A stretch of DNA of 63,560 nt, counting the filler, from Octopus bimaculoides (Eukaryota): assembly GCF_001194135.2 (NCBI RefSeq). It is 7 parts of 6 records of this genome, joined end to end, with 100 filler letters (N's around TTAATTAATTAA, not from the genome) between each part and the next. Parts side by side here need not be neighbours in the genome. Positions count along the whole stretch, not along the records: positions 15,114 to 35,370 come from NC_069004.1; 6 more parts are not named here. One strand, given 5' to 3'. The notes under the pieces are model-generated. The model searched no databases, was not told the DNA's origin, and saw nothing but the letters and a program-made list of their open reading frames with translations. The first letter of the stretch is position 1; every line of letters begins with the position of its first letter. The position numbers and the translations under genes were made by a program. Shown here piece after piece: positions 9,675 to 35,370 of the stretch.

Positions 9675-10362
9675 ATATGTGTATGTATATGTATGTATGT
9701 GTATGTATGTATATATGTATGCATATATATGTATNNNNNNNNNNNNNNNNNNNNNNNNNNNNNNNNNNNNNNNNNNNNNNNNNNNNNNNNNNNNNNNNNN
9801 NNNNNNNNNNNNNNNNNNNNNNNNNNNNNNNNNNNNNNNNNNNNNNNNNNNNNNNNNNNNNNNNNNNNNNNNNNCATATATATACACATATATATCCATA
9901 TATATATATATATATATATATACACGCACATACATACATATGCAAATAAGTAAACCAAGTATATATTTACGTCTATCTTATTTTTTGAAATATGAGTATG
10001 TCTACATTTATATCCATAATATTTCACGACATTAATAAAGATATTAATCTTTGTTGTGATGTGTCGGCCATTAGACAAGGAGACATAAGAGAAAAATTCC
10101 TGTTTAAGGGTAGACAACTTAATGTGTGTCAACTAAATAATCAGTTACTCATCTGGCTGATGATTTTCGTCGTTTTATAGACAAAGCAAGTAAACATTTA
10201 TACATTAAAGTTTCTACTCTTTGTCTTATTTTACCATACGTTTGAGATTATGTGACGTACGTTGTACGTACATTACAAATTGCCACATAAGCTATTTATA
10301 TATATATGTTTACACACGCACACATATACACACACATACAGCCACCCATATANNNNNNNNNN

Positions 10363-10409: not shown

Positions 10410-12877
10410 TCACACACATGTATACACACACATGTATAAAATAATGTGTTTTGAATAGCACAACAATGCACTATAATAACAACAATGAACTATAGTACCT
10501 GTTATAATTTAAACATCCACATTCTGATATAATATTTCGGAATATAAAAATTCCTTCAGATATCACTAGGAATTGATCGAGTCACTGCTATATATATATA
10601 TATATATATATATATACGTTTATGTGTAATACATGCTGACAATTATGTGCACGCATACCCAGTAAGTTATGTATGTATGTATGTGTATATACGTAAGAAA
10701 AGAAATAGTGTGTGTATATCTTCTTTGCATACAGTTGCACTGATGAATATGTGACGTGTTCATGTCAAAAATATGTTTAGCTGTGATAGGAATAACCTAT
10801 TGGAGGTAAATATATTTTCTTCTATCACTTAATTGTATTACAGTAATTGGTAGCTTCTTTTCGTTATAGTTCCATCCAGGTAGAATCTGGTTATGCTCTC
10901 AGCCATGCCACATGCGCTTTCGTTGTGTGGTTAATGCATAACAAATCAGGGCTTCGATGCAGTCTCCCTATTATGAATCTATTTGCGTGGTGTAGATACA
11001 ACAGGTAGTTTATTATAAAGTAGAGTATAGGTAAACCTTTTCTTACATTTGTGGCTATCTTCTCAATGAAGATATTTACGAAAGAAGGTTCGTGTTTTTC
11101 AGATATCTAAGTTACAATAGAATTTGTTTCCCCACTTTGCACTAAGTGTGTGTGTATGTATGTGTTTTTTTTTAAATCTTCTTTATTCGTTTCAATCATT
11201 AGATTGAGGCCGTGTAACTGCACCGCCTTCAAGAATTTTAGTAGGATGAATCGACCGCGGAGAAACGAAATAAAGTTGTTCTCAACAGATTTGGTGGGAG
11301 ATAGAATTATTTTCTAATAGGTTTGACTGAGTTTCATACGACGTAAATCTTCTTGGATGCGTAGGAAGAACCCACCTCATCATCTTGAACTTGTCTCAAA
11401 TCCGTTATTCTGCTTCTGATACCTAATGAGAGGGGTTCGTCTTAAGCGCCCACGGAAATTTAAGCCTTATGAATTTCTGTGTCAAACTGGTATTAAAATA
11501 TATATATTTACGTTTTTATATATGTGCATATGTATATATGTTTGAAGTTGTGCATGTCTATACATATAAACGTACGTAAATAGGTGGTACAATCGCTAAG
11601 AAAAACAAAATTCACTACAATTGTGCTGTACACTTTACTCTGGGAGCAAGAAGTGTGAACGCCCGTCAGTTTCGCCCCGGGTGTGAAACATCAAACTGTG
11701 AAATTTAGAGAAAGAAAAACGGAAGCGAAAAATGGCGAGTTTACACAGCAGTAAATACAGTGTGTGATTTATTGGTTTTCTTTATAATAATTGGGCGTGT
11801 GTACGTAAGTGTGTGTGTGTACGTGTACTGGTTACAAATACATCAACTTGGTTGGATTTATAAAAGCACACTGCATTCTGTATAGTGTGTGTGTGTGTGT
11901 GTTTACGCGCGCATACATATATACAGATATATGTATGCTCATCGTTTTACAAATGAGAAGCAAAATACACGCCATGGAAACGGTATTTATGTATTTATGG
12001 TGGCGCTGATATTTCTCGCTGTTGCAACTCAGAGTGTCGCCAATATTCTCGTTATTCTTGTACCTGATGATAAATTGCAATCTACAGTATTTATATTCAA
12101 ATATGATGGCCAGGATTCATGTGATATCCGCCTATCTACATATGTGTGTGTGTGTGTGTGTGTGTGCATATGCTGATACACATTAACACATATTCACATA
12201 CATATGGAAGCACACGCACAAACATATATACATACACGCAAGAACAGATGCATAAATGCGTTCGTACATTTTTAAACACATACATACTGGCACAGATATT
12301 TGCACACACACACATACATGCTCACTCACGCATAACGTTTGTGTTTGGCCTTAAAATGTATTGAATTGTTATATCATATTTACAGTTATCCCTATTCGTC
12401 TCACATATTTCTCTTAGTTCTGTATGACATACATTCTATTTCCTATTTCTTCCATTGACCACACATATTTTAAGCAAATCAGTCTTTGCTTCGTCCATCA
12501 TATTGTGTTAGAAATAGCTGTAGTTTGTAGTTCAATCATCAGCCACGTGATCAGCGTGTATGGACGTGAATGTCGGAGTCGTAACAGAGAGTAATATCAG
12601 CGCTTTAATGTAATCCAAAGCGTTTTTCCCAGAGAATCGAAACGCATGAACTAAGGGCAAACTACATAGATATCCGAGCAAACTGCATTCAAATACATAA
12701 TAATAACAATAATAATAATAAAGATATCGGATTGAAAGATAGTGAAATTGGGACTTCATTGCCGAACTGCAGAAAAATGCATTTCTGTATTCTACAAGAA
12801 TCCTAAGAAAGATTCTTGAGATTTACAGAAACCAAAACTTCAAGACAACATTATTGCTAATATAGCCTGTAATAGGG

Positions 12878-15114: not shown

Positions 15115-15648
15115 TCAATTTTGGTGTATTGGTGCAACTCTGAATTTTGATTACGATCAACAAATTATATTATCTCATAAATTAAAAAATCTGGGAAAAT
15201 TTGGGTAATCAAAGGAGTCCATAGATAAAAAAAAAAAAAGATTGAGAAACGCTGTTCTAAATCATCTAAAATATTAAACTTCTCTTGGTCATTTTGTGGC
15301 GTAGCTTACTTGAAAGATAAGTAATATGACTTCTTCCATTCATCGTATTTCTCCTGGATCTAATGGAGAAAGAGCACCTTGTCTCTAGTGCTTATCCTCA
15401 TTTGAACATAATTGGGATTCAGGTAAATACACTGTGATTGATTCACTGAGTCTATTGGGTAATATTTTTGTGAAGATCTTCCTGACTATAGAAGGTAAAG
15501 AATAACAGTGGTGTAAGAAGTGTATCAGGTCTGTACGAGGATTATAACAAGATTATAACAATTGTAAAGGAGAGAGTAATATGATGAAAGTAATACAAAC
15601 AAAAGCAGTTACCATCTTTTCTTAATTTTCCTTTTCTTTCTGTTTTAG

Positions 15649-15691
15649 ATACCTCGGCACCAACCACATGTGAAACCATCTCCTGTGACCT
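15649..15691 (+). CDS. TNF-like gene A exon 2 (stalk, 43 nt)
   Basis: tttctgttttag|ata...gtgacct|gtaagt; encodes IPRHQPHVKPSPVT+t. Flanking introns are homologous to those of gene B exon 2. Confidence 0.8.
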
Positions 15692-18600
15692 GTAAGTATA
15701 TATATTTTGTTACCATTTTCCTATCCATGTGTCTATAATATCATCTTCAGCTGTAACATATTGTTACATTAATGAAATCACTAAACATGTTCTCAGTAAC
15801 AGACCTTCCTCAAAGTTCAACCCATGACCTCAATGTGGTGGGAAGGTTAAACGAGTGAGTGTCAGAGCTATGCCATCGGGGACTCTGAGTCCCTGTTAGG
15901 GCCACCCAAGGTGGACAGGTTTGACACCAGCGGTGCTAGGGCCGCAACCCGGCTAACTGAAGGGCAATGGTGAATTCCAGGCAACATCTGTTCCGGAATC
16001 CAGCAGCTTTCTGGTGGTGTTGGACTGCATCTGTAGGCATCCTGCAGCAAGAAGGCTTAACACAAGAACAACCTGCCAATGGTTATGTACGGTGGCTTAT
16101 GAATACAGGCAGCAACTGTTTCCATGGGCTCTGATCATCCCTTGAAACTCCTATGAACTCATCACTGGAACCAGGAATGGCTTCAACACACTGCAGTATT
16201 GGCCATCAACAGAAAGTAAGAGACATACTAAAGAAATAGATGGCAAAAATACCCATATTATTAAATATATAAAAGAAATGTCTACGATAATTAACTGGAC
16301 CATGGCTTTAGATGACACTTTGACAGGAGGAAACTCCCTGTGTACATTTTGTATTATCAGTCTCAGCAAGGCATTGCTACCGTACAACTGACCATATTAA
16401 AGCCTATGAAACTATATGATGGGTGTAATATATAGATATTTATATAGTCTTGGTTTTCTTCATTAATGGTTAATACTTGTTCTCCATGATGATTGTGAAA
16501 CAGTTAATGTTGTACAGTTATTTATTAGATGATAATCTGAAGTATAAAATATATGAGATGCATCAGGTAGTGACATTTTCTGGTCTTAGTCTTCTGTTTG
16601 ATAATGAACCGGATCTATTTTAAAACGGGGGCCACAGTTTTCATTAATGTTTTACGTAGTGTTTTTGGTACGGAAAGACTTTCAAACTTCGTATACTTAT
16701 CTATTTTGTGTTATAGAACAGAAAAATATTTTTGTATTCGAATTTATTTCATGTAAAAAATTGTCTTATTTTGATTATTTCAACCAATCACTGACAAGTA
16801 TTCAGTTGTTTATATTTACTCCTTTGGCTGATTAAGCGGTGTAAAGCGTATTTAATCTCCATAACTTCTTTTTTCATTTTAAATTTGCTTTTTTCATTTT
16901 CTTTTTTTTTTCTTCGTTTTATTTGCTTTTTTCTTTTTAAATTTGCTGTTTTACCCTAACCCTAACCCTAACCCTAGGGTTAGGGTTAGGGTTAAGGTTA
17001 GCCTATAATAGAAATGTTTATTAGCTACTGCCAATATGCTTCAGCCATTTTTTGACAAGGAAATAATAATTTTATCACCGATAGAATTGTTTCAGAATCG
17101 TTTGTTTATGTAGTCGGCACTTAATGTATATCGGTTGAATGGACGTCAGTGATTGGTTGAAATTACAGAAATACGACAACTTTAACATGGAATAACTTAG
17201 GGATTTCTTTTTTTTTTTTTTAAGAAGACTAAGATAAAAAGATGTTTTATATGACACATTCTACCAGTGTTCCAAGTTTCAAAGTGTTTCGTTAAGAAAA
17301 TACTGTGGCCCCCGTTTTAAAATAGATCCAATGAACCTGTATTCAAATACATCTTATTTACTCTGTTTTCTCACTTCCTTCAGTTCACCATGCCTTCTTT
17401 CACTTGAAAACAGAAGGTTACAAAAAGTTGGGTAAGTTAATTTATACAGATTTATAGCAAACTTTTTCTCATTATTCAAATTATGCTCATTAAATTACTA
17501 CAATTACATCATCATCATCATCATCATCGTTTAACGTCCGCCTTCCATGCTAGCATGGGTTGGACGATTTGACTGAGGACTGGTGAAACCGGATGGCAAC
17601 ACCAGGCTCCAATCTAATTTGGCAGAGTTTCTACAGCTGGATGCCCTTCCCAACGCCAACCACTCAGAGAGTGTAGTGGGTGCTTTTACGTGTCACCCGC
17701 ACGAAAACGGCCACAAAATACTTTCATTAAAGACATGTGTTAATGACTATTATTATGTACTTGAATTAACTCCTGCTATTATAGAATTTGAGAAAACTAT
17801 TATACTTGGGTGAAGTATATCACCAATATAGACTTAAGTGTTATGACAAGCATGAGTTAACTACTATATTGAAAGATATGGACCAACTATAATTATAATT
17901 AGAAACGTCAAATACAACATGTAGAGATATGTGGACCAACTACTACTACCACCACCACCACTATGACAACCTCTACATATGTCTGATAATACTACAGGTG
18001 GGAGGCGTTTACTGCTTGGGTTGTGGTTTAATTATTACAGACCAACCTCCAAAACATAAATAAAACACTAACGAACAAAATCAACATCAACAAACAAGAG
18101 AAATAAATATATTCAGTATTTTGACATTGATAAGATCACATCAACAAGGGTTAAATAGAGACAGTCTGTATAAGAATAGGAATGTCCTTAGACTTCATTT
18201 AATTGTATTCAGAAGTTTTAAAGATTATACAGAGCATATCTGAATGATTACTTTTAACTACATTGTTAGCTGGACAATTATATATATATATATATATATA
18301 TATATNNNNNNNNNNNNNNNNNNNNNNNNNNNNNNNNNNNNNNNNNNNNNNNNNNNNNNNNNNNNNNNNNNNNNNNNNNNNNNNNNNNNNNNNNNNNNNN
18401 NNNNNNNNNNNNNNNNNNNNNNNNNNNNNNNNNNNNNNNNNNNNNNNNNNNNNNNNNNNNNNNNNNNNNNNNNNNNNNNNNNNNNNNNNNNNNNNNNNNN
18501 NNNNNNNNNNNNNNNNNNNNNNNNNNNNNNNNNNNNNNNNNNNNNNNNNNNNNNNNNNNNNNNNNNNNNNNNNNNNNNNNNNNNNNNNNNNNNNNNNNNN

Positions 18601-20195
18601 NNNNNNNNNNNNNNNNNNNNNNNNNNNNNNNNNNNNNNNNNNNNNNNNNNNNNNNNNNNNNNNNNNNNNNNNNNNNNNNNNNNNNNNNNNNNNNNNNNNN
18701 NNNNNNNNNNNNNNNNNNNNNNNNNNNNNNNNNNNNNNNNNNNNNNNNNNNNNNNNNNNNNNNNNNNNNNNNNNNNNNNNNNNNNNNNNNNNNNNNNNNN
18801 NNNNNNNNNNNNNNNNNNNNNNNNNNNNNNNNNNNNNNNNNNNNNNNNNNNNNNNNNNNNNNNNNNNNNNNNNNNNNNNNNNNNNNNNNNNNNNNNNNNN
18901 NNNNNNNNNNNNNNNNNNNNNNNNNNNNNNNNNNNNNNNNNNNNNNNNNNNNNNNNNNNNNNNNNNNNNNNNNNNNNNNNNNNNNNNNNNNNNNNNNNNN
19001 NNNNNNNNNNNNNNNNNNNNNNNNNNNNNNNNNNNNNNNNNNNNNNNNNNNNNNNNNNNNNNNNNNNNNNNNNNNNNNNNNNNNNNNNNNNNNNNNNNNN
19101 NNNNNNNNNNNNNNNNNNNNNNNNNNNNNNNNNNNNNNNNNNNNNNNNNNNNNNNNNNNNNNNNNNNNNNNNNTGTGTGTGTGTGTGTATATATAAATTA
19201 AGGTGGCTCTCTTTTACTTGTTTCAGTCATTTGACTGCGGCCATGCTGGAGCACTGCCTTTAGTCGAGTAAATCGACCCCAGGACTTATTCTTTGTAAGC
19301 CTAGTACTTATTCTATCAGTCTCTTTTGCCGAACCGCTAAGTTACGTGGATGTAAACAGACCAGCATCGGTTGTCAAGCGATGTTGGTGGGGACAAACAC
19401 AGACATACAAACATATACGTGTCTTCTGCTATAGCCCTGAGCCAACCGAAGCTTTGTGATTGAATTTGGTAGGCGGAAGTTACTGCCGTGTGTGTATACG
19501 TCTGTGTATGTGCTTGTGCCTCTCTCCCAAAGAGAGAGAGAGGGGGATATATCCATATATATGACAGGCTTCTTTCAGTTTCCGTCTACCAAATCCACTC
19601 ACAAGGCTTTGGTTGGCCTGAGCTTATAGTAGAAGTCACTTGCCCAAGGTGCCACGCAGTGGGACTGAACCCAGAACCATGTGGTTGGTAAGCAATCTAC
19701 TTACCACACAGCCACTCCTGCACCTATATATTAATGCTAGGTCTAATAACCAGCTGATGTAGATTTGTGTGAGGAAACACTGTAATGCATTGTCTATGAG
19801 TAAATAAATCATTTCTATATAACTTTATACTTGGTTCATTATAATATGCTCAGTGATGTGTTACATAATTTTCCTCTTGAATAGAAACAGCACAAGCATG
19901 TTGTGACATGTACAGACAGCCATGTACAACATAGTAAATGGCTGGCTGCAGTTAAGTTTCGTATTAACAATAAATGTTTGACAGATTAGAAGCTCTTTGC
20001 ATTTATTTGTAACTTTGAGCATCTAATCAGGATTGGCAGTTTTAATAAAGAAGTTGGTAGTAACCTCATGATACTAGCAAGTAGCTAGAAAGGCCTCCAA
20101 GTGTTTTCACAGGGTTCTAATGTTTATTAGCTCTAAAATATTTCTCAGTGTGTATGCAGAATGTAGACTAGATGAGACATGAATTAAATGGACAT

Positions 20196-20230
<35 letters not shown>

Positions 20231-21693
20231 CCTATGTGTGTGTTTGTTTCCTAAAGAGCTGGCTTGATCTTCATCCCTACCATACAGTATGAGATGGTTG
20301 ATCCTTTAAACTCATATCTCGAAGTTACTTTCCTCAAAAGCAACATTAAAGGAATCCATTCTGCGTAAAACAAATAGCAAAGAAGGCGTTGTTTCCTTGA
20401 AAGTTCCCTCTCTTCATTCTTAATCTTCCTAGATCCTGTCTGTTTTATGGGAGTTCTGTCTTCCAGTTCTCCATGCCTTTTTTTCAAACAATCCTTGACA
20501 TCCTTTGCAATTCCAAACCTGTTCAACCATTCAATGTTCCTCAAACATGGTATCATGTCAGAGGCCTTACAAAAATATGTCCAGACCATTGCTAAACTTG
20601 TCTTCCTTTGCTTACTGTCTTTCATTACCTTTTTCCTATTTTATTGGAGAACTTAAGACCAGCTACTCACAGATAAAATGGTGATTATTATTATTATCAT
20701 CATTATTATTATTGCTATTATTATTATTATTGAGTGAGAGCAGTGCATGCTATCAACTTGACACTGAGATACGAATATACAAGGCCTAGTATACCTGTCT
20801 GATAAGGGTACACCAGGCACATGCATCACAACCATATGTGTATGAGATGATGATCTTATATCAAGATAAACAGTACATGACCTTGCAGGTGAGGCCCAGT
20901 TGGAATTTTCTTCTGGATCAGTAGCCCATCGCACTCAAAAGGTCACAGATTAAGGTTTGTTTAAGGATGATAAACAAAACACCCATGTATCCAGAGGTGA
21001 TTTATTCAAACCCCAAAGAATTCCTCTCAACACATCTGTGATACTCTCCCACAAATTCTACTCACGATCAGAGATGCACATATCATCAGTCACTAAAGGA
21101 CATGTTCGTCTGGTTAATGACAAGCAGCTGACATGCAAATCAGTGTTATTGAGCAGAATATTTGCTGTGGCCCATCTTTTATACCACGACTAAATAATGT
21201 ACATGTTAATACTTCCAATCAGTTAATTATCATTTATCAGTTATTATTATCATCTTCATCATCATCACCACCACCATTATTATTATTATTATTTCTTTTT
21301 TCAGATGACGTGATTAATTTACAGTGGCTGAAAGATGACAGCCAAAATGTTGGTAACATTAAATTGATTGATGGATGTTACTTCTCTATACCCCAAGATG
21401 GTCTTTACCAAATAAACTTTGTGATCCAGTTGCATATTCCGAAAGATGCTAATGCATCAATTGTAACCTTGGTGTTACAGAGAAAGAATAATGAAAAAGA
21501 TTATGTATTCATGAAGAAAAGTTCAAGTTCCTTAACCATATCAGAACATGACACGATACAGTCATCATTTAGATACAAATTTAAAGCTGATGAGATAGTC
21601 TTTTTAAAGATGAACATGGCAAAATTTATCAGCTGCAATAAGAACTCCAGCTATTTGTATATCAGCAGATTGAACATAAACAATAATCATTAA
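15649..21693 (+). CDS. TNF superfamily ligand-like gene A (exons 2-4; exon 1 not resolved)
   Basis: Exons 15649-15691, 17384-17431 and 21305-21693 have canonical AG/GT sites and join in frame (phases 0/1/1): IPRHQPHVKPSPVT-FHHAFFHLKTEGYKKL-DDVINLQWLKDDSQNVGNIKLIDGCYFSIPQDGLYQINFVIQL...YISRLNINNNH*. It carries TNF-domain hallmarks (A-strand xxHL, conserved LQW, IPxDGLYxI). Exon structure matches paralog B. Confidence 0.85.
16611..17329. mobile_element. Palindromic MITE with 28-bp TIRs and 8-bp TSD (Merlin-like by GG ends), telomere-like core, in gene A intron 2
   Basis: TIR ggatctattttaaaacgggggccacagt at both ends; TSD aatgaacc on both sides. Internal inverted repeats (ttcaaccaatcactgac). 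Central (taaccc)n-(tagggt)n palindrome at about 16955-17000. Empty site in gene B intron 2. Confidence 0.85.
17384..17431 (+). CDS. TNF-like gene A exon 3 (48 nt, first THD strand)
   Basis: cacttccttcag|ttcacc...aagttgg|gtaagt; phase 1-1; encodes FHHAFFHLKTEGYKKL. 39/48 nt identical to gene B exon 3. Confidence 0.88.
17507..17714 (-). mobile_element. 5'-truncated 3' end of the same RTE LINE, inserted in gene A intron 3
   Basis: Matches 46745-46930; absent from the homologous position in gene B intron 3. Confidence 0.85.
19200..19725 (-). mobile_element. SINE family B, full-length copy in gene A intron 3
   Basis: Match to 25060-25465. Confidence 0.85.
20260..20650 (-). mobile_element. R4/Dong-type LINE RT fragment
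   Basis: KQRKTSLAMVWTYFCKASDMIP...LNRFGIAKDVKDCLKK (degenerate AWIDYRKAYDMVPH). Confidence 0.65.
21305..21693 (+). CDS. TNF-like gene A exon 4 (TNF homology domain, terminal exon)
   Basis: atttctttttcag|atgac acceptor; open to TAA 21693 (within ORF 21133-21693). Motifs LQW, G-I-K-L-x-x-G, IPQDGLYQI. Confidence 0.9.
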
Positions 21694-21727
21694 AATGTTG
21701 TGCTTCTTCTGTGGGCATTTTCATTTG

Positions 21728-21945
21728 ATTATATCTTATTTCTTTATTGCCCACAAGGAGCTAAATATAGAGGGGACAAACAAGGACAAAGGGATTAAGT
21801 CGATTACATCGACCCCAGTTTATTGACCCCGAAAGGAGGAAAGGCAAAGTTGACCTTGGCGGAATTTGAACTCAGAACATATTGGGAAACAAAATACCGC
21901 TAAGCATTTCGCCCGGCGTGCTAACGTTTCTGCCAGCTTGCAGCC
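21728..21945 (-). mobile_element. SINE family A copy immediately after the gene A stop codon (3' UTR)
   Basis: Match to family A, about 35 nt after the TAA. Confidence 0.8.
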
Positions 21946-22439
21946 TTTTATAATCATTTGATTATGTCTGTTTCTTTGTATTTTGTCTAGCTCAAAATGC
22001 AAAAAAGACATTGATGTAAATAGTCATGTATATTGTTTGTACGCACCAATCCTCACACATGGGCAAATACGTATTTTTCTATATAACATGCTATTGAATC
22101 ATTGTAAATAAACAATCATTGTAAATAAACTAATTCTAAAACTAATATATTCCATGTTTTCTATTTTTACGATTTCCTATTCGGTCTTCTACTCTTCCTA
22201 TTATTATTTTATTTTTTCCTTTCTTTGTTTTGCACCATTGCTTAAACTTTGGAATTTTTGTATTTTTAATGGACCAAGCAATGCACTTAGTAATTCTGAA
22301 AAGAAAGCAACATGGAAGTGATACATGAAAAGTTATTAAATGTGAAAGTGTATGGGAGAAAGAGTCTTCCCAACTACCCTAGTTGAAAGCAGTATAATAA
22401 AGTAATTCAAGATGTGAATGCTGGAAAATATCACTGAGA

Positions 22440-22730
22440 TTTTTTAAATTTCTGTTGGGAAAGGATATAGCCTGGTCATCCAAATAGTTAATCAGGTTGT
22501 ACAGGAAGTTGTCATAACTTATGACTGATATTGCAGCATTATAGTTGACTATTACAATGATAAAAGAGATGCTTTAGAGAGAGGTAATTACAGATGTATC
22601 AGACTGCTGGACCAAGTCCTGAAAGTTACAGAAAGAACTATTACTCAATTAATTAGGAAGCAAATTAGTCTTGATGAGATGTAGTTTGGTTTCATGCCAT
22701 GGAGAACTATTACTGATACGATTTTGTAAC
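22440..22730 (+). mobile_element. RTE LINE reverse transcriptase fragment
   Basis: DALERGNYRCIRLLDQVLKVTER...ISLDEM*FGFMP. Confidence 0.75.
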
Positions 22731-23239
22731 GATGAATGTAAAAATAAAATAAGGAATGGCAAACATGTTATAAGTTATTTTATTTTATTTATTTATTTTT
22801 TTTTTTTCACTCATTATTCAAAATTTCAAAGTGGGCTGTGGAGCCTGAAAATGTAAATTTAAGAACTTCAGATTTTAACAGTTGTTTTTAAAGGATTTCA
22901 CAATAAAAAGATATATTCTTGAAAATTTTTTGCTCCACCCTAATGTGCAGCTTAAGTGTGTGAGAACAAGGTACAAATATGTTGAAAGAAAAACTGGACC
23001 TAAGAGTGATCAAATTTAGAGTAAAAAACAGCTATTAAGGAAGAATTATAAAGCTCATAAAGGAAGAATTAAACATACATAGATACAGTTTTTAATAGAC
23101 AACACGTCTTTTTTTTAAATTTGATAAATCAAAACACAAAGTTGTTGGAGTAAATGCATATTAGCATGCAAGAATTAAGCTTGGTTATAACAAAATATGA
23201 ATACAAAATCTCTACTTACTGTGGTCATTCATTCTGATC

Positions 23240-23680
23240 CTCTTATTACTGCATGAACTTCCTCATTTTTGACGATTTCTTGTGCACAGCTTCTGGAAAA
23301 TCTCTCATCAAGCGCCAGCGGCAGTCTACCATCATGTTTGAATCTTATTGGCCTTGAGAGTGTTCTTCCATTACTTTCACATCTCAATGAAAGTGTTTAC
23401 CTTGTTCTTTGCTAACATCACGCAATTTCTTTCGAAACTCACCCAAGTGATTGAGTAAGTAGTGTAATTTAATGCCCATTCTACATCCAGGTGTTTGTAA
23501 ACTCAAGATCAGTTCTTTCACAATCTCCCACGGAAATTCCACACCACATCAGAGAAGACATTCCAAGCGCTAGCCTCAACTACACTCATTGTTGTAACAA
23601 AATGTGGACCCCTGAAGAGTATTCTTATTCGAGGTTCATCAAATATTCCTGCCTTCTTGTCATTGAAATCTGGAGAGCTT
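23240..23680 (-). mobile_element. DNA transposon transposase relic (Chapaev/CMC-like)
   Basis: KAGIFDEPRIR...EASAWNVF...GCRMGIKLHYLLNHL...VSKEQGKHFH*DVKVMEE...NMMVDCRW. The superfamily assignment is from memory of the motif. Confidence 0.65.
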
Positions 23681-23724
23681 GTACATATATACATACAGTC
23701 TCTACTGTGATCAAGTTTTATGTG

Positions 23725-24076
23725 CAGTGTCTCTATTTGTTGTATTTGATCCACATGTATAATTTCAATTATAGTTGGCCCAAGTCTTTCAATATACTAA
23801 TTAATGCTTACTTGTCATAAGAGGTATATAATGGTAATATACTTCAACCAAATGGAATAGTTTCCCCTCATTCTACAACAGCAGGACTAAACCCAAGTAC
23901 ATAACAGTAGCCTTTATCATATGTCTATAATGAAAGTATTTTAATACTGTAATAGTAAGAATTAGCTTAAATCTGTAATTTCAGTTATTTAATGGGCATA
24001 ATTCAAATTATGAGAAAAAGGTGTGCAATAAATCTGAATAGATTAGCTTACCCAACTCTTCGTAACCCTTTGTTTT
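23725..24076 (-). pseudogene. Partial duplicate of gene B (3' part of exon 3, its donor and about 320 bp of intron 3)
   Basis: Near-identical to about 29275-29623 (tgtctctatttgttgtatttgatcc...cttacccaactcttcgtaaccctttgtttt). It diverges mid-exon, and no exon 4 was found downstream. Confidence 0.8.
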
Positions 24077-25059
24077 CCCTATGAACCAGAGGGTTATTAA
24101 CGATATTCTTGTCACCTGGCTTCAAATGGTTTCTTGAGAACCATTCTTTTTTTTACCTAGTGATCTTTTGCAGCACTACTGTTCTAATAGTACAGGAAAC
24201 AAGGGTATTTAGTGTAACTTCTTTGCTGGTCCAGTAGGAGGTTTATAATTTTCAAATTAATACAAATTACCTTTTTCCTACAAATAGTGGTATGAAGTTA
24301 AATATTGGCATGCTCCAGGTAGATACCAATGTGATGTGTTGTGATAGAGCAAATCAGATGCCAGTTTTGGAATCAGCAGTCAAAAATTAGTCTGAAGCAG
24401 GTCTAAGATTTTATACCAGAGAAAAAAAAGTTTTATTTTGTTGACTAGTATTATTAACATTACATGATATTTACACTTAAATGTCTCATGTTATAATATT
24501 CACACAGACAGAGGGAACACAGTCGGATTAATTCATTAAATTGTCCCATTGTTCATGTTATAGACACAAAACCCATCCCATTTTTCAGTCTTATGTATTT
24601 GAAAAGCAAGCACAAACAAACAATGATCAATGGTCCTTACTGGACCATAGGCTCACAAGGCCAATTTGTTTGGATTCTGTGGTGAAGAGGTGCTGGTTCA
24701 TTGCAGGATTACTTACTTCTGCCAGCTGAGTGGACTGGAGCCACGTAAAATGAAGAATTTTGCTTATAAACACAGTTCTTGAACAAAACACTTGCCCAGT
24801 TTTTTCTCACAGCACATTTATACAATGTTGCTCATACACACTTACGTTGCATATCCAATGGAGCATGCTCCATTTCTTTCCAGTCTACTAAGGTCCTCTA
24901 CATTCAAGACCCCTATCATGCAATATTGCAGTCCTAACACAAGTGTTATACAACCTACCATTCAGTCTATCAGAAAATATCTTTGTTGTCAGCAGTCATA
25001 GTACAGTTGAGAATCCCTTCTCCAGAATTCTTGGGACCGAAAGTGTTGTTGATACTCTC

Positions 25060-25465
25060 TTTTTACTCTTTTACTTGTTTCAGTCATTTGACTGTGGCTA
25101 TGCTGGAGCACCGCCTTTTAATTGAGCAAATCGATCCCAGGACTTATTCTTTGTAAGCCTAGTACTTATTCTATCGGTCTCTTTTGTCGAACCACTAAGT
25201 TACGGGGACGTAAACACACCAGCATCGGTTGTCAAGCGATGTTGTGGGGACAAACACAGACACACAAACATATACACACACACACATATATATAAACACA
25301 TATATACGACAGGCTTCTTTCAGTTTCTGTCTACCAAATCCACTCACAAGGCTTTGGTCGGCCCGAGGCTATTGTAGAAGACACTTGCCTGAGGTGCCAC
25401 GCAGTGGGACTGAACCCGGAACCATGTGGTTTGGAAGCAAACTACTTACCACACAGCCACTCCTG
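25060..25465 (-). mobile_element. SINE family B (tRNA-derived, internal (TA/CA)n)
   Basis: ggagtggctgtgtggtaagtag...gggttcagtcccactgcgtggcac...actgaaacaagtaaaagag. Other copies at about 1755-2095(-), 19200-19725(-), 26160-26330(-), 32300-32580(+), 35785-35960(+), 44735-44823(-), 57930-58040(+), 60280-60480(-) and 60930-61070(-). Confidence 0.85.
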
Positions 25466-26301
25466 TTTTTTTTTAATTTTTTTTATTTCAGAGTATTTTT
25501 TAATTTGTGTTTATAAAATAGGACAGCATGAAGATAAGACCAAAATCTAAATACAATATCCATATTTACATTTCATAATATAACTTATACATACACCCTG
25601 AAATGTAGTTTTATGTACATTTTTAATCATTTTTTTTTAAATACACAATACCACCAGAAATATATGATATCAGTCTCCAAGTATGATGTCAAATTTTGAT
25701 TAAAAGGTTATTGTCACATGTACCCCATTTGTATTATATTTTGTAACATACAATAGGTTTTTAAGATATAAAAACAAACCATTCAACTTAATTACAGGTA
25801 AATCATTTCTGCTATAGGTACAAAGCCTGAAATTTTGAGTAGGAGAGCTAATCAATAACATCAACTTCAGTACTTGACTGGTACTTATTTCATTGACCCC
25901 AAAGGGATGAAGGTTAAAGTAGACCTTGATGGAATTTGAACTCAGAATATAAGATGGATAAAATGCTGCTAAGAAATTTTTTAAGCATACTAAAATAAAT
26001 AAAACGAAAACAGAAAAAAAAGGTAAGTATTTTATTTTTAAAGTTATGTACATGTAATGATGTTAAGCATTTTTACAGCATTTAAGTAAAATGAAAACTG
26101 AAAACAATAAGCATTTTATATTTAATTATGTACGTGTAATTATGCTAATCATGTTACATTTAGTCGAGCAAATCGACCCCAGGACTTATTCTTTGTAAGC
26201 CTAGTACTTATTCTATCGGTCTCTTTTGCCGAACCGCTTTGTTACAGGGACGTAAACACACCACCATCGGTTGTCAAGCGATGTTGGGGGGACAAACACA
26301 G

Positions 26302-26337
<36 letters not shown>

Positions 26338-26338
<1 letters not shown>

Positions 26339-26900
26339 CTAGCAGTATAGCCCGGCGCTGCTCGGGATTAAGCTAGGATTATTAAATGATTAAGTGCTTT
26401 ATTTCAAACCAAAATAAGTAACATCTACATCATATTTGAGCGAAATCCGTTGAAGTTGGTTTGGTTGAAAATGGTTTGCTGGCAATTTGATTGGGAAATC
26501 CCATAAGGAATCAGTTTATTGGTTATTTTCAGTCATTGACTCTTTTTTTTAAATGCTGAATTAGAGATCTGCATAGGAGAAGGTTGATCTGAAGATTTGC
26601 ATTGGGGATCTGGATTGGAGTAACTTAGGAAAGCTTACCAACAACCTTAACCAAAAAATAAGGGGCCTCTCCCTTCTAGGTTAACTAACCCTAACCCTAA
26701 CTGACCCTAAAACCGTAACCCTAACCGTAACATCCTAGTGGAAATCGTGCGGGTGTTAATCTGAAAAATTATCAAACCCTTTTTGTGGTCCGAAAAACGG
26801 GTTGGGGGTGGGGTGACTGACAATTGTTACATACGTTTTTGTTTCATAGTTGTGAATGTAAACAAAACTCTTTCGCTCCCAAAGTATATGTGCGTATGTG
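26338..26900 (+). mobile_element. Possible Helitron/HINE-like element with (taaccc)-like repeats
   Basis: Starts actagcagtatagcccggcgctgctcggg (subterminal hairpin); aaccctaaccct tract at about 26690-26730. Confidence 0.4.
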
Positions 26901-27433
26901 TGAGAGTGAGAGGGGGGAGAAAGATGAAAGATTTAAAATAAAAAATTTTTGAATTGTTGTGTGAGAAAGTATATATAATCTTATAGAATAGAGTGTCTTT
27001 CAAAAACATCTTATATTTGAAACTATATCTCATGTTTAAGAAAACAAATGCATTTTACTCTGTCTTCCTTAGCTACATTTTCTTTCCTAATACGCTTTGT
27101 CTCCCTCTTCCACTTGTTCGTTCCTTTTTCTTTTTTTTTTTTTTGTTAGACGCTGTCTTGGTGAGAGAAATTTTTTTTTCCTTCGCCGCTTTGTCTCCCT
27201 CTTCCACTTTTTTTTTTTTAGACGCTTCGCAAGCAGTTTCTCCCTGTCACAAACACACTATTTCTTTCTTTCTCTCTCTCTCTTTCTTTCTTTGCTGGTT
27301 CTTGTGACCCGACACTTGGATTGGCTGCTGCCAATTGCATCTTGGAATAAGACCAACCTTTATTTGAGACCTACAACCACAAGCTATTTTGGCATGGGTG
27401 CTTACCAGTTGTAAAAATATATTGAGGATTATT

Positions 27434-27804
27434 TTAGTGTATGTTGGTGATAGAACAGCGGCTTGAGGACTTATCAGGACTGATGAATTTCACTTTGTTC
27501 ATCCTGAAATAGATCTTGTCATTAACTTCAAGATATTTTGTGGATATCAATTGTATCCTGGTATGTTCTGAGAAAGTTAAGGAATTTAAAGTTTCCTTTA
27601 TGTATTCATATTGTGTTCCATTCTTTCCCTCCAATGTCAAGAACATATGAAATGTAATAGTATTTTTTGGAATGTTGAGTTGAATTGTACATTCTATAAG
27701 GTAAATACCATCTTCAGGAATATAAATGAAAGTTCCACCAAGCAATTTAATATCCCCTTTACTCTGGTTCATAACTTTTATCCATTGTAAATTAGTTAGA
27801 CTCT
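27434..27804 (-). CDS. TNF-like gene B exon 4 (TNF homology domain)
   Basis: tttttccag|agagt acceptor; lies within ORF 27434-27817. About 38% aa identity to gene A exon 4 by hand alignment. Confidence 0.9.
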
Positions 27805-30800
27805 CTGGAAAAAACAAAAAAAAAACCAGACATAAAGTGTTGGAGTGTACACAGAATGAAATTATAGAAAAATGTAAAAGGTATATATGGTATACAAAAA
27901 AAAAAGGAAGAAGTATTCATAGTACACATCAGTAAAAAAAAAAAAAAAGTGTTTTTTCTGATACAGGAGGACCTCTAGGGTGGGGCAGTAGGGGCAGTTA
28001 TGTCTGTTGTAGGCAATCTGTACTCTCCTCCTCTTTTGGGTATCACTTGCCATGTTCCAACTCATTCCTCCTACTCCAAATCAATCCACATTAACTTTTA
28101 TTGATGCAATCGTTGGACTGGACTGCCTATATTCAGTCCACTGCAGGATGAAGACTTCAGCATATCCTCTCCACCAACCATGTTCTGATGTGGAGGCTGT
28201 GAATTTGAGCTTGAGACCATACTGGTTTGTTGATCCTGCCACACTGGCTCAACATGGCTTGGCAAAAGGGTGCTTTTTTTTTTCTTTTATACTTTTACCT
28301 AGGAGTAGATAAGTCAGTGGAGGCGCAATGGCCCAGTGGTTAGGGCAGTGGACTCGCGGTCACAGGATCGCAGTTTCGTTGTGAGTGTTTATCGAGCGAA
28401 AACACCTAAAGCTCCACGAGGCTCCGGTAGGGGGATGGTGGCGAACCCTGCTTTACACTTTCACCACAACTTTCTCTCACTCTTACTTCCTGTTTCTGTT
28501 GTACCTGTAATTCAAAGGGGCCAGCCTTGTCACACTGTGTCACGCTGAATATCCCCAAGAACTACGTTAAGGGTACACGTGTCTGTGGAGTGCTCAGCCA
28601 CTTGCACGTTAATTTCACGAGCAGGCTATTCCGTTGATCAGATCAACTGGAACCCTCGACGTCGTAAGCGACGGAGTGCCAACACAGATAAGTCAACTGC
28701 ATCAACTCCAATGCTTAACTGATACTTATTTTATTGACTCCGAAAAAGATGAAAGACGAAGTTGACCTTAGCAGAATTTGAAACCAGAAAATAGGGACAG
28801 ATGAAATATCCCTAAGCACTTCACCTGGTGTGCTAAAGCTTCTGCCAGCTAGTTGTCTTATTGATGTGATCTTATTGATGTTAAAATACTGAATATATTT
28901 ATTCTTGTTCACTGATGCGGAATTTGTTTTTTTTTTTGTTTTTTACACCTTCTCAATTTATGACCCATGTGACAAAGATCGTCCACACTTACGACCACAA
29001 AAAAAAAAAGAAAGAAAGAAAAAAAAAGAAAATAAATAAATAAAAATCGACTTTCAGACGTTGGGCAGGTACACGTACAATAACTGTGGCAGCATCTGGC
29101 AACGGAGGCCTCCCTCAGATCCCGGCATCCACTGTCTGCTACTGTCTCTCACTCAGTCGGTTTCAAGCATCAGTTGTGTGTGAATGGGAAAAGTGTTGTT
29201 GTTGATGGTGGTGGTGGTGCTGGCGGTAGTAGAAGCAGTAGCAACAGCAGTAGCTGTAGCAGCAGTTTGGCACATGTCTCTATTTGTTGTATTTGATCCA
29301 AATGTATAATTTCAATTATAGTTGACCCAAGTCTTTCAATATACTAATTAATGCTTACTTGTCATAATAGGTATATAATGGTAATATACTTCAACCAAAT
29401 GGAATAGTTTCCCCTCATTCTACAACAGCAGGACTAAACCCAAGTACATAACAGTAGCCTTTAGCATACGTCTATAATGAAAGTATTTTAATACTGTAAT
29501 AGTAAGAATTAGCTTAAATCTGTAATTTCAGTTATTTAATGGGCATAATTCAAATTATGAGAAAAAGGTGTGCAATAAATCTGAATAAATTAACTTACCC
29601 AACTCTTCGTAACCCTTTGTTTTTAGGTGTAACAAGGAATGGTGAACTGAAAGATTGGAAGAGAGAAAGCAGACAGTGAGAAGGATATATTTTGATATAG
29701 GTTCAATATCAACAGAAGACTATTCAAAGAAAAGAGCACCTCCTGATGTATTTCATATATTTAATATTTCAGATTATCATCTAATAAATAACTAAACAAC
29801 ATGTTAACAGTTTCATAATCATCATTATCATAAATAAAAATTATCTTCATGGAGAACAATAATTAACCATTTATTAACCATTAATGAAAGGGAGCCAAGA
29901 CTATATAAACATCTATATATTACACTCATCACAGTAGTTACATGAGCTTTAACATTGTCAGATGTACGGTAGCAATGCCTTGCTGAGACTGATAGTACAA
30001 TTCTAGTAAACGTGTACAGGAAGCTTCATCCTATCAAAGTGTCATCTAAAGCAGGGGTTTTCAAATTGTGGTCCGCGGACCACAGGGGGTCCGCAAGGAC
30101 AAGACAGGGGGTCTGTAGACAGCAAATACTTTTTATGGGCAATTTGATTTTATATATGTTTTTTAATCGAAATCTTTTAATTGACAATAAACCTATTTGT
30201 TAAATACTGTTAAATAAATAAATGTAAAAATATGTTATTTTAAGCAAATATTTATGTGTAAATTTAATAAGCGTTTATAAGGGGGTAGTAAAGCCTGAAA
30301 TATAAAGGGGTCCGCAAGTCAAAAAGTTTGAAAACCCCTGATCTAAAGCCATGCCCAATTAATTATTGTAAACATTTCATGATGTGGGTATTTTTTTCCA
30401 TTTATTTCTTTATGCCTGTAACTTTTCAAGTTGAAAGAATTGTTGCCTATTAAAATATTAAAATAGACTAATATATTGAGGACATGTTTAAAGATTTCAT
30501 TACTGTTACAATATATTAATGTCAGATGATTTTATAGACATATGAAATGAGAAACGATTACAATATATGTACTTACAGGGTGGAGAAGTTGGTGTCGTGG
30601 GCAGTGGTGAAGTTGTTGCCACAGGCTGTAGAGGAGGTGGAGGAGGACATTTCTTCTAAAGTAAAAAAATAAAGAGAGAAGAAGAGGCAAACTAAGATAA
30701 GAGGGTGACTGGTGCTATTTGTATTATTTCCATCATATTACTTTCTCTTTTAAGGTTTGTCATTGTCTGGTTACAATCCTGATACACTTGTTATATACTT

Positions 30801-32471
30801 TTACTATTGGAGGCGCAATGGCTCGGTGGTTAGGGCAGCGGACTCGCGGTTTCGATTCCCAGACCGGGCGTTGTGAGTGTTTATTGAGCGAAAACACCTA
30901 AAGTTCCACGAGGCTCCGGCAGGGGATGGTGGCGAACCCTGCTGTACTCTTCCACCACAACTTTCTCGCACTCTTACTTCCTGTTTCTGTTGTGCCTGTA
31001 ATTCAAAGGGTCGGCCTTGTCACCCTCTGTGTCTCGCTGAGTATCCCCGAGAACTACGTTAAGGGTACATGTGTCTGTGGAGTGCTCAGCCACTTGCACG
31101 TTAATTTCACGAGCAGGCTGTTTCCGTTGATCGGATCAACTGGAACCCTCGACGTCGTAAGCGACGGAGTGCCAACCACAAGAACAATACTTTTACTACT
31201 TTTGTCTTATACTTGATACACTCTTCTCACATTCACGTTAGTATTGGTCTCTTGTTACATATTATCTCTGTCATGTTACTGTGCTACACACACAAATATG
31301 TACACACACACACATATGAGAAGTAAAAGGAATCAACAAACGCAGGCAGATAATATTTTTCATTATAAATGATCTTGACAGTCTTTTTAAATATTCTTTT
31401 CACTCTACTGTTATTTTATTGCCATTTATTTCCGAGCATTATAAATTTTACAGGTAAAATATTTTTCTGGGAATAAATTACGATTAATAACACTGCTGCT
31501 ATGGGAAATTATTGCTCAGCTTTACAAGTTTTCACTTAACAAGCGGTCTCTGGAAACAAATTAATTCATATATCGAAATGTTACTGTATATACACACACA
31601 CACACACACAAATATATATACAGTGTGTTCACAAAGTCTGGGTACATGGAGTAAATAAAATCGTAACATAAACAAATATAAGAAATAATAATTTCTTAAA
31701 GTATGTGTTAATCCCCATGTGGGTACATGGAGTAAATAAAATCGTAACAGAAACAATTAAATATAAGAAATAATAATTTCTTAAAGTATGTGTTAATCCC
31801 ATGTGGGTACATGGAGTAAATAAAATCATAACATANNNNNNNNNNACAGAAACAATTAAATATAAGAAATAATAATTTCTTAAAGTATGTGTTAATCCCA
31901 TGTGGGTACATGGAGTAAATAAAATCATAACATAAACAATTAAATATAAGAAATTATAATTTCTTAAAGTATGTGTTAATCCCTATGTACCCAGATTTTG
32001 TGGACACCCTGTATAAAGCACTCAATGTTAAATGTACCTGGTTGACTATATGAAACAATTAGGTAGCAAAAAATGCAAGTAGAATTAGCATTCAAGGTAA
32101 TTTGTCATGTATGACAGGTAAATCCAAATAACACTACGAGAATTTCAAGAAATTCAGAGTAAAAGACAGCAAGAATAAGAATGGAGACAATCACATCTTT
32201 AACTGGTGATTACACCATACTTTACTGATAATTGTTTCTTTTGTGCCAACATATTTAGATACAGAAAAAATGAATAAAATTTCCACTCAAATTAATATAT
32301 CTGAAAATAGTGGCTGTGTGGTAAGTAGCTTGCTTACCAAACACATGGTTCTGGGTTCAGTCCCACTGCGTGACACCTTGGCCAAGTGTCTTCTACTATA
32401 GCCTCGGGCCAACCAAAACCTTGTGAGTGGATTTGGTAGACGGAAACTGAAAGAAGCCCGTCGTACATATG

Positions 32472-32508
<37 letters not shown>

Positions 32509-33597
32509 ATGTTTGTCCCCCCAACATCGCTTGACAACCGATGCTGGTGTGTTTACGTCCCTGTAACTTAGAGGGTTGACAAGACAACACATGCTCATGG
32601 AAACTAATGAACATTTATTTACATTATGTCTACCCAAAACGAAAGATTGCCAAAACAGCGATTTTTCGTTTCGATTTGCATGTCTGTCAATTTACTATGA
32701 TCGCTTTAACATAAGCAAAATCAAAATTTTAAATTGGGGAGGGGGCGGATTTGAAAAGGTGGAAAGTGCATTTTTCAAGGAGATGTGCAATTCTTCAAGA
32801 AGAGGTGCAATTACATTGACCTCCTAATATGAAACAAAACCCATTTTCTTTTTATCCAGAAAACGGGGTGGGGTGGAACCATTGGAAATTTCACCCCCTA
32901 CTCCCCCCCTTTTTTTAAAAAACAAAAATACGCGGAAAGAATACATTTCCGACAGCTTACGAGGTCTTCTAAAACGATTGCACCCCCCCCCCCAAAAAAA
33001 AACGCGAAAAGAAAATTATTTAGCACCGAACTTTAGTCTGGTATGAAACTATAAATTTACCGAAAGTTGTCTCATTTCTAAAAATAGAATGAGGGGAGAA
33101 CCGTCAAAACGGGGGAAACCCGAAATGACGACGTTGCTGCTANNNNNNNNNNNNNNNNNNNNNNNNNNNNNNNNNNNNNNNNNNNNNNNNNNNNNNNNAT
33201 AAATTTACCGAAAGTTGTCTCATTTCTAAAAATAGAATGAGGGGAGAACCGTCAAAACGGGGGAAACCCGAAATGACGACGTTGCTGCTAATGGTTTTAT
33301 GTGTGGGATAGTAAAAAATTTGGACAAATTTAAATGTACGACAATTATTCAAAAGCCTGCTGAAAGTAAATAAAGTTCGAGTTTTACCTGGGTTAGGCAG
33401 ATACAAACAAAAACAAGTATAATCAAACAACAAAGGCTTCCGTATTTATAATAATTTGAGTCGAGAATTTTCTGACATCTAGATTTAACTGATTTGTCTG
33501 GAGTAAAATTTCCAATTTCGTCCACATTTTGGAATGAGTTTTGTTGTTTATTGTTCGCATCTTGGTCCAAAAGAGTTAGTGATAAAGCAGGAGGCAT
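27434..33597 (-). CDS. TNF superfamily ligand-like gene B, complete 4-exon type II membrane protein (235 aa)
   Basis: Exons 33597-33388 (210 nt), 30655-30577 (79), 29646-29599 (48) and 27804-27434 (371) total 708 nt in one frame, all GT-AG. Protein: MPPALSLTLLDQD...YYKYGSLCCLIILVFVCICLTQ (TM) KKCPPPPPLQPVATTSPLPTTPTSPP (stalk) FHHSLLHLKTKGYEELESLTNLQW...IPEDGIYLI...SITNIH*. Confidence 0.9.
28319..28686 (+). mobile_element. SINE family C in gene B intron 3
   Basis: ggaggcgcaatggcccagtggttagggcag...gacggagtgccaac; flanked by an agataagtca duplication. Confidence 0.85.
29599..29646 (-). CDS. TNF-like gene B exon 3 (48 nt)
   Basis: ccaatctttcag|ttcacc...gagttgg|gtaagt; encodes FHHSLLHLKTKGYEEL. 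Confidence 0.9.
30052..30340. mobile_element. hAT-type MITE in gene B intron 2
   Basis: 14-bp perfect TIR caggggttttcaaa; perfect 8-bp TSD atctaaag. The paralogous empty site (single ctttagat) is at 16306-16313. Confidence 0.9.
30577..30655 (-). CDS. TNF-like gene B exon 2 (Pro/Thr-rich stalk)
   Basis: tttactttag|aagaaa...ccaccct|gtaagt; encodes KKCPPPPPLQPVATTSPLPTTPTSPP+t. Confidence 0.87.
30808..31185 (+). mobile_element. SINE family C in gene B intron 1
   Basis: Same family; flanked by a tacttttacta duplication. Partial copies at 36400-36603(-) and 37370-37545(-). Confidence 0.85.
31621..32011. mobile_element. Tc1/mariner-type MITE with internal tandem array (about 4 x 82 bp), in gene B intron 1
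   Basis: TA-flanked. TIRs cagtgtgttcacaaagtctgggtac / cagggtgtccacaaaatctgggtac (22/25). Units start gggtacatgg at 31640, 31721, 31805 and 31904. Confidence 0.8.
33388..33597 (-). CDS. TNF-like gene B exon 1 (cytoplasmic tail plus transmembrane signal-anchor)
   Basis: aaaaATGcct start; ends ...CICLTQ cag|gtaaaa in phase 0; hydrophobic segment GSLCCLIILVFVCICL. Lies within ORF 33349-33615. Confidence 0.85.
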
Positions 33598-34002: not shown

Positions 34003-34918
34003 TCAGGTTATCCCATAAGTTCTGTCCAATTTTACCTTTTTTAAAATTGAATGAAATTTAATAGTATTTTAGAATGTCTAATGGAATTAAAAATTATTTT
34101 TATGCATTTGTGTACATTTAAACTAATTAAATATTATTTTACAGAATAATAGAATTAAAATTTCTTTGATTAAAACCCTTTCTAACATGAAAGTATCCAT
34201 AGAGCATTTGAGGAACAAAATGTTTTATGAGTAGAAAAAGGAAACTCTGCAGCCGAAGCTACTCCAAACATACACCCAGTTTATGGGAAAGAATGCTTGA
34301 ATGAAAGAACTTGCAGAAGATGGTTTGCAAAATTCAGAAGTGGAGATTTCAGCCTTGAAAATGAAGATCAAACAGGACGTCCAGTTGAGTTTGATGATAA
34401 GCTCCTTGAGGCATTACTTGAAGAAAATCCTGCATTATCAGTTGAAGAATTGCCAATAAAGCTTAGTTCAAACCATACAACTGTTTATCGTCATCTTCAA
34501 CAACTTGGAAAGGTTCCTAAACTTGGAAAATGGGTGCCTCATCCTGAGTTGACATCTGCTCTTCTCTCCATTCTCGCGAAATCATTTCACCCTTTTTGGA
34601 TAGACTTGTGACTGGTGACGAAAAATGGATCTTCTATCGAAATGTTAAACGTCGTAAACAGTGGCTCTGTAAAAGGGGAAAAGCTCAACCACAACCGAGA
34701 AGGGAACTTCATAGGAAAAATGTTCTTCTCTCTATTTGGTGGGATTGCAAGGGAATAATTCGCTTTGAATTGTTACCACCTAATGTAACAATCAATGCTC
34801 AAGTTTACTCTCAGCAATTAGAGCGTTTGAACCAAGCTTTGAAGGAAAAAAGACCCGCTTTAGTGACTCGAAAAGGAGTGATGTTTCATCAGGACAATGC
34901 GCGACCCCACACTGCATC
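34003..34918 (+). mobile_element. Mariner transposon, decayed and 3'-truncated
   Basis: TIR-like end after TA (catcaggttatcccataag). ORFs with RRWFAKFRSGDFSL, GKWVPH, VTGDEKW, LLSIWWD and HQDNARPHTA; stop codon, frameshift and deletion present. Confidence 0.9.
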
Positions 34919-35370
34919 ACTCCTTTTCGAGTCCAGGGCAGGTAACATACTGGATCTCTGCTTCACAAATAATATGGATCTGTAGTGAAACTACCTATCG
35001 TCTCTTCTACCTATCGCCATTAGATACAAAACTGATATCGCCATTCTTCTCATTTAAATATAAACACACGCGAGCGTAGCAGAGAACATCAACCTTGTCA
35101 TCATGTGACTGATCATTATTCGAATCGGCAACTTCTTCGAACCGTTCCCGCCAGAACGCAAACTGACCAATCACAGCCCCTTATAAGGTCACATGATAGT
35201 GTTTTTCTGCTACCGTCTTGGAGCCCCCTTAACGCCTTAAATAGAGCAGCTCATACCCAACAAATTTGTCTCGGTCCAGTTTCTCTATAGAGACTGTTCC
35301 GTGTACCACACGACAGCAGCAGCAACAATCAGCCAGTGACCACTTCAACAGCTTCGTCCAGCCAACGATG
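34919..35370 (+). mobile_element. CR1/L2-like LINE fragment abutting the mariner
   Basis: RAGNILDLCFTNNMDL resembles the end of an APE endonuclease. Confidence 0.5.

Follow-up and report, generated by a model that had tools for sequence, protein, structure and literature searches.

The ligands of the tumour necrosis factor (TNF) superfamily (TNFSF) are best compared through their vertebrate members (TNF-alpha, lymphotoxin-alpha, RANKL, TL1A, CD40L, TRAIL and APRIL), which are type II membrane proteins with a C-terminal jelly-roll domain of ten strands, most of it encoded in the last exon, and whose genes stand in local clusters. Molluscan and other invertebrate TNFSF/Eiger homologues, abalone TNF and the oyster TNFs among them, show lineage-specific expansions, and six TNF ligand paralogues of Octopus vulgaris are reported to fall into one monophyletic group amid lineage-specific molluscan expansions (bioRxiv 10.1101/2024.07.27.603686). 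Here I consider two genes of Octopus bimaculoides, called A (LOC106872473) and B (LOC106872472), that lie in a window (the whole stretch of DNA that was analysed) of 63,560 nt, filler included, joined from seven parts of six records of assembly GCF_001194135.2. Both are found in the piece that comes from NC_069004.1 (positions 15114-35370), and positions are those of the window unless another record is named. I think it highly probable that A and B are two intact genes, arranged tail to tail, that encode type II membrane proteins from a branch of the TNF ligand superfamily specific to octopods and belong to a cluster of at least four such genes.

The likeness of A and B to the vertebrate ligands extends from the type II topology and the C-terminal ten-strand domain to common A-strand, L-x-W and (I/V)P-x-x-G-x-Y motifs, to the encoding of most of the domain in the last exon and to the occurrence of the genes in a local cluster. 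They differ from the vertebrate ligands in a shorter domain (about 140 aa) with short loops, in an identity of just 11-17%, in leaving the PROSITE signature unmatched and in a stalk in which no furin site was found. With the molluscan and other invertebrate homologues they share a lineage-specific expansion of TNF ligands. From the N terminus, the proteins begin with a short cytoplasmic tail of 42-51 residues and cross the membrane in one helix, predicted from a single strongly hydrophobic 19-mer; no signal peptide was found. A stalk rich in proline follows, and then, at the C terminus, the TNF homology domain, which is encoded by a 48-nt exon, for the first strand, together with the terminal exon.

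Gene B is complete. It runs on the minus strand from 33597 to 27434 in four exons of 210, 79, 48 and 371 nt with intron phases 0/1/1, and its spliced exons form a single open frame of 235 codons. The coding part of exon 1 (33388..33597, with the ATG at 33597) encodes the cytoplasmic tail and the transmembrane segment YGSLCCLIILVFVCICLTQ and ends at a phase 0 donor, GTAAAA. Exon 2 (30577..30655) encodes the Pro/Thr stalk, KKCPPPPPLQPVATTSPLPTTPTSPP. Exon 3 (29599..29646, phase 1 to 1), which was located by a scan for windows of the form AG-48 nt-GT open in phase 1, encodes (F)HHSLLHLKTKGYEEL(E), and the coding part of exon 4 (27434..27804), with its TAA stop, encodes most of the TNF homology domain. 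The hydrophobic segment occupies residues 52-70, with a mean Kyte-Doolittle value of 2.27, and no signal peptide was found in the protein. A preliminary description of the window, made from the sequence alone, had described B as complete, as a membrane protein of type II and as bearing a Pro/Thr stalk, and all three points hold. In one respect B departs from the family: its final strand reads SRCSITNIH and carries a deletion of five residues.

Gene A, on the plus strand, shows exons 2 to 4 in the piece. Exon 2 (15649..15691, 43 nt) encodes the stalk IPRHQPHVKPSPVT, enters in phase 0 after the acceptor ttctttctgttttag and leaves in phase 1 at the donor gtaagtat. Exon 3 (17384..17431, 48 nt, phase 1 to 1) encodes (F)HHAFFHLKTEGYKKL(D), the first beta strand of the TNF homology domain, and the coding part of exon 4 (21305..21693), with its TAA stop, encodes 129 aa, most of that domain. 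The junction between exons 3 and 4 gives a gapless alignment to paralogs B, C and D. The public model of the gene, P0002 (XP_014774972.1, UniProt A0A0L8H6W3, 223 aa), agrees exactly with these three exons, exon 2 being identical to its residues 65-78 and exon 4 matching its residues 95-223 at 100% (tblastn), and it has an additional exon 1 outside the piece. The peptide of that exon finds no match within 15114-35370, and exon 1 of gene A thus lies beyond the edge of the piece. The description of both as four-exon genes holds within the piece for B, and A contributes three of its exons; the common phases 0/1/1 are seen directly in B, and in A they follow from the 43-nt and 48-nt exons together with a public exon 1 whose end (LTQ|) coincides with a codon boundary, just as that of B does. 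The type II topology of A is likewise found through P0002. Nothing coding begins at 15500, the coordinate from which the description had counted the pair.

The arrangement of the pair is as first described. The terminal exons, A on the plus strand and B on the minus strand, are paralogous, with a protein identity of 39% (BLASTP E=1e-27), and the stops are 5,740 nt apart, the distance having been put at about 5.7 kb. The 48-nt exon 3 noted as common to both (A 17384-17431, B 29646-29599) is identical at 39 of its 48 positions, and each copy has a polypyrimidine-AG acceptor and a GTAAGT donor. Since the introns of A and B contain colinear blocks of 75-80% identity, whole genes were duplicated and not their exons only.

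The splice junctions are borne out by models made independently of them: those built here reproduce RefSeq XP_014774969.1 (B) and XP_014774972.1 (A) residue for residue. Two public isoforms of B (UniProt A0A0L8H6M7) are accounted for by a tandem NAGNAG acceptor, tttAGaAGaaatgt, at 30652-30657 in front of exon 2, since the alternative start at 30652 drops one lysine, the residue by which RefSeq isoforms X1 and X2 differ. The longer isoform (P0021, 235 aa, XP_014774969.1) is the model built here; the shorter (P0003, 234 aa, XP_014774970.1) uses the acceptor 3 nt downstream, and its residues 1-70 match exon 1 at 100%.

Relatives of the two genes were sought with an exhaustive HMMER search, in which a profile built from the exon 4 translations of A and B was run against 1.84 billion representative proteins at E<0.001. 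It gave 20 matches, and the genuine ones are all from octopods: Octopus bimaculoides, O. sinensis and Argonauta hians. Members other than A and B include LOC106873363 and LOC106878338 of O. bimaculoides, LOC118761074, LOC115224005, LOC115224014 and LOC115224071 of O. sinensis, and GAB1598702 and GAB1610964 of A. hians. They have the architecture of A and B, a first strand of the form HHAFFHLKT-GY and domains that are 20-56% identical to that of A or B, and among them A and B stand as distinct, divergent members. The first strand is encoded by a 48-nt exon in all five genes checked (A, B, C, D and O. sinensis P0005). Matches P0012, P0015, P0017, P0018 and P0020 were rejected as spurious, being long, internally repetitive and matched in many short stretches. 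A word-indexed protein search, too lossy for this family, gave nothing with B exon 4 and just 4 proteins with the profile of 12 sequences.

It is at the level of this family that the domain is clearly a TNF homology domain and not a C1q domain, and both genes encode it. The Pfam TNF profile (PF00229), for which the gathering score is 23 bits, is matched by 7 of 12 aligned family domains (best E=1.1e-6), and the Pfam C1q profile (PF00386) by none of the 12 members at E<=1. Paralog D of the cluster (P0004) passes the TNF cut-off with 26.7 bits in a match that spans positions 1-124 of the 127 in the profile, and tblastn connects it to A and B with E=1e-39 and 1e-34. The family profile also matches PDB chain 7dov (E=1.9e-5) in a region that includes the L-x-W and IP-x-DG-x-Y motifs; the chain is labelled lymphotoxin-alpha in the sequence table and zebrafish TNF-alpha in the Foldseek table. 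In UniProt both A and B bear the name 'TNF family profile domain-containing protein', which implies a match to the PROSITE profile of the TNF homology domain (PS50049). The preliminary description had proposed the comparison of TNF with C1q profiles, and its assignment to TNF stands.

Nor did structure favour some other fold. The domain of gene B (exons 3 and 4) was modelled by AlphaFold2 with the alignment of 12 sequences, giving a predicted local distance difference test score (pLDDT) of 90.9, a predicted template modelling score (pTM) of 0.86 and 10 beta strands; a model made with an alignment of two sequences reached a pLDDT of 61.7 and was left out of the fold search. When the former was compared by Foldseek with the PDB, the top 50 structures were all TNFSF ligands (RANKL, TNF, TL1A, CD40L, APRIL and TRAIL), with E from 1e-7 to 2e-6, TM-scores of 0.63-0.78, probability 1.00 and identities of 11-17%, and none of the 50 was a C1q structure. 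The jelly-roll fold was modelled on gene B, and its extension to gene A is drawn from 41-43% identity in the same alignment. The core fold positions L-x-W and G-x-Y-x-I are invariant across the family.

Several results weigh against membership in the TNF superfamily. Taken by itself gene B scores 16.2 bits (E=0.01) with the Pfam TNF profile, under the cut-off, and gene A alone gives no match to it. The classic TNF signature PS00251, built on the G-x-Y strand, is matched by none of the 12 family members, when tested by a regular expression written for this analysis, which did match human TNF as a control; the residue after the signature tyrosine is polar in the family (GIYEI, GLYQI). This pattern is missing from many accepted TNFSF members as well. 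The alignment of the family to human TNF alone by hhalign is weak (probability 11%, E=0.0027). Because the PROSITE signature goes unmatched and the alignment to human TNF is weak, I take the octopod family to be a divergent branch of the TNF ligands.

If A and B act as TNFSF ligands do, their jelly-roll domains would form a homotrimer at the surface of the cell, from which a protease might release it; the trimer would cluster cysteine-rich receptors of the TNFR type, and the clustered receptors would in turn signal through TRAF, NF-kB, JNK or apoptosis. Immunity and tissue homeostasis would be the most plausible settings. What was observed is the structure of the genes, the features of topology, the fold and the homology; trimerisation, receptor binding and biological role I infer by analogy with known TNFSF ligands. 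The conserved residues of the trimer-core strands (G-x-Y-x-I and the C-terminal hydrophobic strand) may fit a homotrimer and are only suggestive of one. An alternative is that the proteins keep the TNF fold and no longer act through TNFR-type receptors, serving instead in adhesion or recognition, for instance, or as secreted effectors. This would suit a divergence so high that the exon-4 profile, at E<0.001, retrieved octopod proteins only from 1.84 billion representatives, as well as the missing signature and the 11-17% identity to solved TNFSF ligands. However, the full type II architecture of a TNFSF ligand is retained and nothing was seen that points to another partner, and I regard such a change of function as improbable.

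The genes were thought at first to be a divergent pair produced by one inverted local duplication, and this idea does not survive a look at their neighbours. The 36-kb record fetched for the locus (L001) holds at least four family genes, in the order D > C > B > < A, with A inverted. Gene D (LOC106873363, P0004) has its exon 4 at L001 4964-5353. Gene C, an intact four-exon paralog upstream of gene B, occupies L001:10001-12787 (equivalent to about 43694-40908 in the window, outside the piece), with exon 1 at 10001-10222, exon 2 from 11339, exon 3 at 11899-11946 and exon 4 at 12405-12787. At the nucleotide level the exon 4 identities are 79% (C-D), 72% (A-C), 70% (A-D), 68% (B-D), 66% (B-C) and 64% (A-B), and no pair in the cluster is further apart than A and B, whose amino acid identity is 38.5%. 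A neighbour-joining tree places A with C, D and others and B with O. sinensis P0005, and the nearest relatives found agree, that of A being its cluster neighbour D (56%) and that of B being P0005 (53% identity). Given these groupings, A and B are not sister copies of one inverted duplication. The gene order and identities indicate that the cluster of at least four genes is the product of repeated local duplication, with one member inverted.

P0005 is itself not a clean ortholog of B, since intron identity between them is 70-87% outside the block around exon 3 that is described below. On its contig (L002, 35 kb) there is no A-like exon within 10 kb downstream.

Over exon 4, the ratio of nonsynonymous to synonymous substitution rates (dN/dS) lies between 0.38 and 0.66 across all paralog pairs. 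Values below 1 in every pair mean that the coding sequence is constrained, and no signal of gene-wide positive selection was found in exon 4 by this measure. Values up to 0.66 suggest that the constraint may be relaxed, which counts against the main reading. The idea that exon 4 evolves faster than neutral, from the comparison of A-B intron blocks at 75-80% with exon 4 at 64%, was rejected as unproven, because the BLAST blocks are a conserved subset, other parts of the introns are unalignable and dN/dS is below 1.

These figures bear on a second alternative, a little less probable than the first, that A or B or both are duplicates in decay (pseudogenes, whether expressed or not) in a cluster of fast turnover. 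Such decay would accord with the A-B pair, whose dN/dS is 0.66 and whose exon 4 identity is just 64%, with the atypical final strand of B and its 5-residue deletion, with the chimeric C-B models on record and with the stray fragment of B exon 3 and intron 3, 349 bp long, that is repeated in the spacer (both taken up below). Yet in every exon of A and B the frame is intact and the splice sites follow the consensus; dN/dS is below 1 in every pair; the L-x-W and G-x-Y-x-I core positions are invariant; the AlphaFold2 model of B is confident throughout; and the X1/X2 isoforms from the NAGNAG acceptor may reflect transcript evidence. The last alternative, that A and B are C1q-domain proteins and hence secreted pattern-recognition molecules rather than TNF ligands, has in its favour the jelly-roll fold common to C1q and TNF domains and weak matches of two family members (best E=2.6e-4) to BclA_C, a C1q/TNF-like domain, but it is scarcely credible and already largely refuted by the Pfam and Foldseek results given above and by the finding, in place of a C1q-type signal peptide and collagen stalk, of an internal transmembrane anchor and a Pro/Thr-rich stalk without Gly-X-Y repeats.

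Two intact TNF ligand genes remain the preferred reading, and one further feature of the family is a conservation around the 48-nt exon that is well above that of the domain exon. A conserved block of about 245 bp covers exon 3 of B and reaches about 110 nt into intron 2 and about 85 nt into intron 3 (29513..29757, minus strand). Its counterpart in A is 17332-17508, and equivalent blocks are found at L001:11790-12030, L001:3500-3740 and L002:17958-18201. Between B and O. sinensis P0005 the block is 94.3% identical, exon 4 only 67.5%. The 350 nt at the end of intron 2 overlap the upstream part of the block and are 86-89% identical among B, C and D, as against 66-79% for exon 4; the remaining parts of the introns are barely alignable. 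Judged from the alignments, the block might be a splicing-control element for the micro-exon, or it might result from localised gene conversion.

Gene C bears on how the locus has been annotated. The products of C that were seen are two fusion models with B and a 71-aa fragment (P0014). The first fusion, XP_052832125.1 (P0001, 315 aa, from the newer RefSeq), runs from exon 1 of C to the middle of C exon 4 and then to exon 2 of B. The other, the older isoform X3 of LOC106872472 (P0022), makes the same C-to-B jump from a second internal site. Both internal sites have good GTAA donors in phase 0 (the donors are at L001 12557 and 12719), and the fusion models could be either real read-through transcripts or artefacts of modelling. 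One may go further and picture an octopod-restricted, fast-diverging cluster marked both by the conserved exon-3 block, as splicing element or by gene conversion, and by conjoined C-B transcripts; I put this forward tentatively, as a combination that I think unlikely to hold in full. If it did, the conjoined product would carry one partial and one complete TNF homology domain.

Automated annotation had been expected perhaps to miss or mis-join the two genes. It did not miss them: both were already present in the first RefSeq release and bear their TNF-family name in UniProt. The concern over mis-joining was justified in part, in that XP_052832125.1 and isoform X3 join C to B; the older RefSeq models of A and B are correct. 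The current RefSeq product of LOC106872472 merges two neighbours and so leaves the intact gene C unrepresented on its own. The genes themselves are already known and constitute an ordinary lineage-specific expansion of TNF ligands, and a literature search found no paper that names the A and B loci. With the genes in RefSeq and UniProt and molluscan expansions, including that of octopus, already described, the field is left much as it was. The benefit is practical and lies in curation, and cephalopod immunology has in the locus a defined cluster of four genes for divergent TNF ligands.

The remaining features of the piece lie between the genes, in their introns and beyond gene B. In GCA_001194135.2 the region is at about 9.90-9.94 Mb of chromosome CM046624.1, and L001 is 100% identical to the piece, with the same gaps. 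The 5,740 nt between the stops (21694..27433) contain the 3' untranslated regions and the spacer, with repeats resembling short interspersed elements (SINEs) and the partial copy of B; a further family exon 4 was looked for there and none was found. The partial copy is a direct repeat of 349 bp, 98% identical (23728-24076 versus 29275-29623), which takes in B exon 3 from its middle to its 3' end and then 324 nt from the start of B intron 3. It is to be put down either to a small and very recent duplication or to an error in the assembly.

All three N gaps in the piece are intronic, and no reading frame crosses any of them. One, of 868 N (18306..19173), is in intron 3 of gene A between (TA)n and (TG)n microsatellites. 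The other two are in intron 1 of gene B, at 31836..31845, within a tandem array of 85-99-bp units (31639-31988), and at 33143..33198 (56 N). The last has a perfect 92-bp duplicate on its two sides (33051-33142 = 33199-33290), and for that reason it probably represents unmerged overlapping contig ends, that is, a false gap with a duplicated overlap and no sequence missing.

The SINE-like repeat, about 170-400 bp, occurs at 19209-19720, 25066-25465, 26159-26339 and 32309-32582 in copies that are mutually 85-97% identical. None of the copies matched a tRNA or an Rfam family, and a scan of the whole piece (15114-35370) found neither Rfam families nor tRNAs. The same repeat is abundant on the O. 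sinensis contig L002. Another repeat, of 370 bp and 90% identical, is present in intron 3 (28318-28683) and intron 1 (30808-31176) of gene B and also at about 4349-4728 of L002, and is probably an unclassified transposable element. Upstream of gene B, at 34297-34985 on the plus strand, is the remnant of a mariner/Mos1-type transposase (HTH_48 and Transposase_1, E=7.7e-28), which is inactive because it is split across two reading frames.

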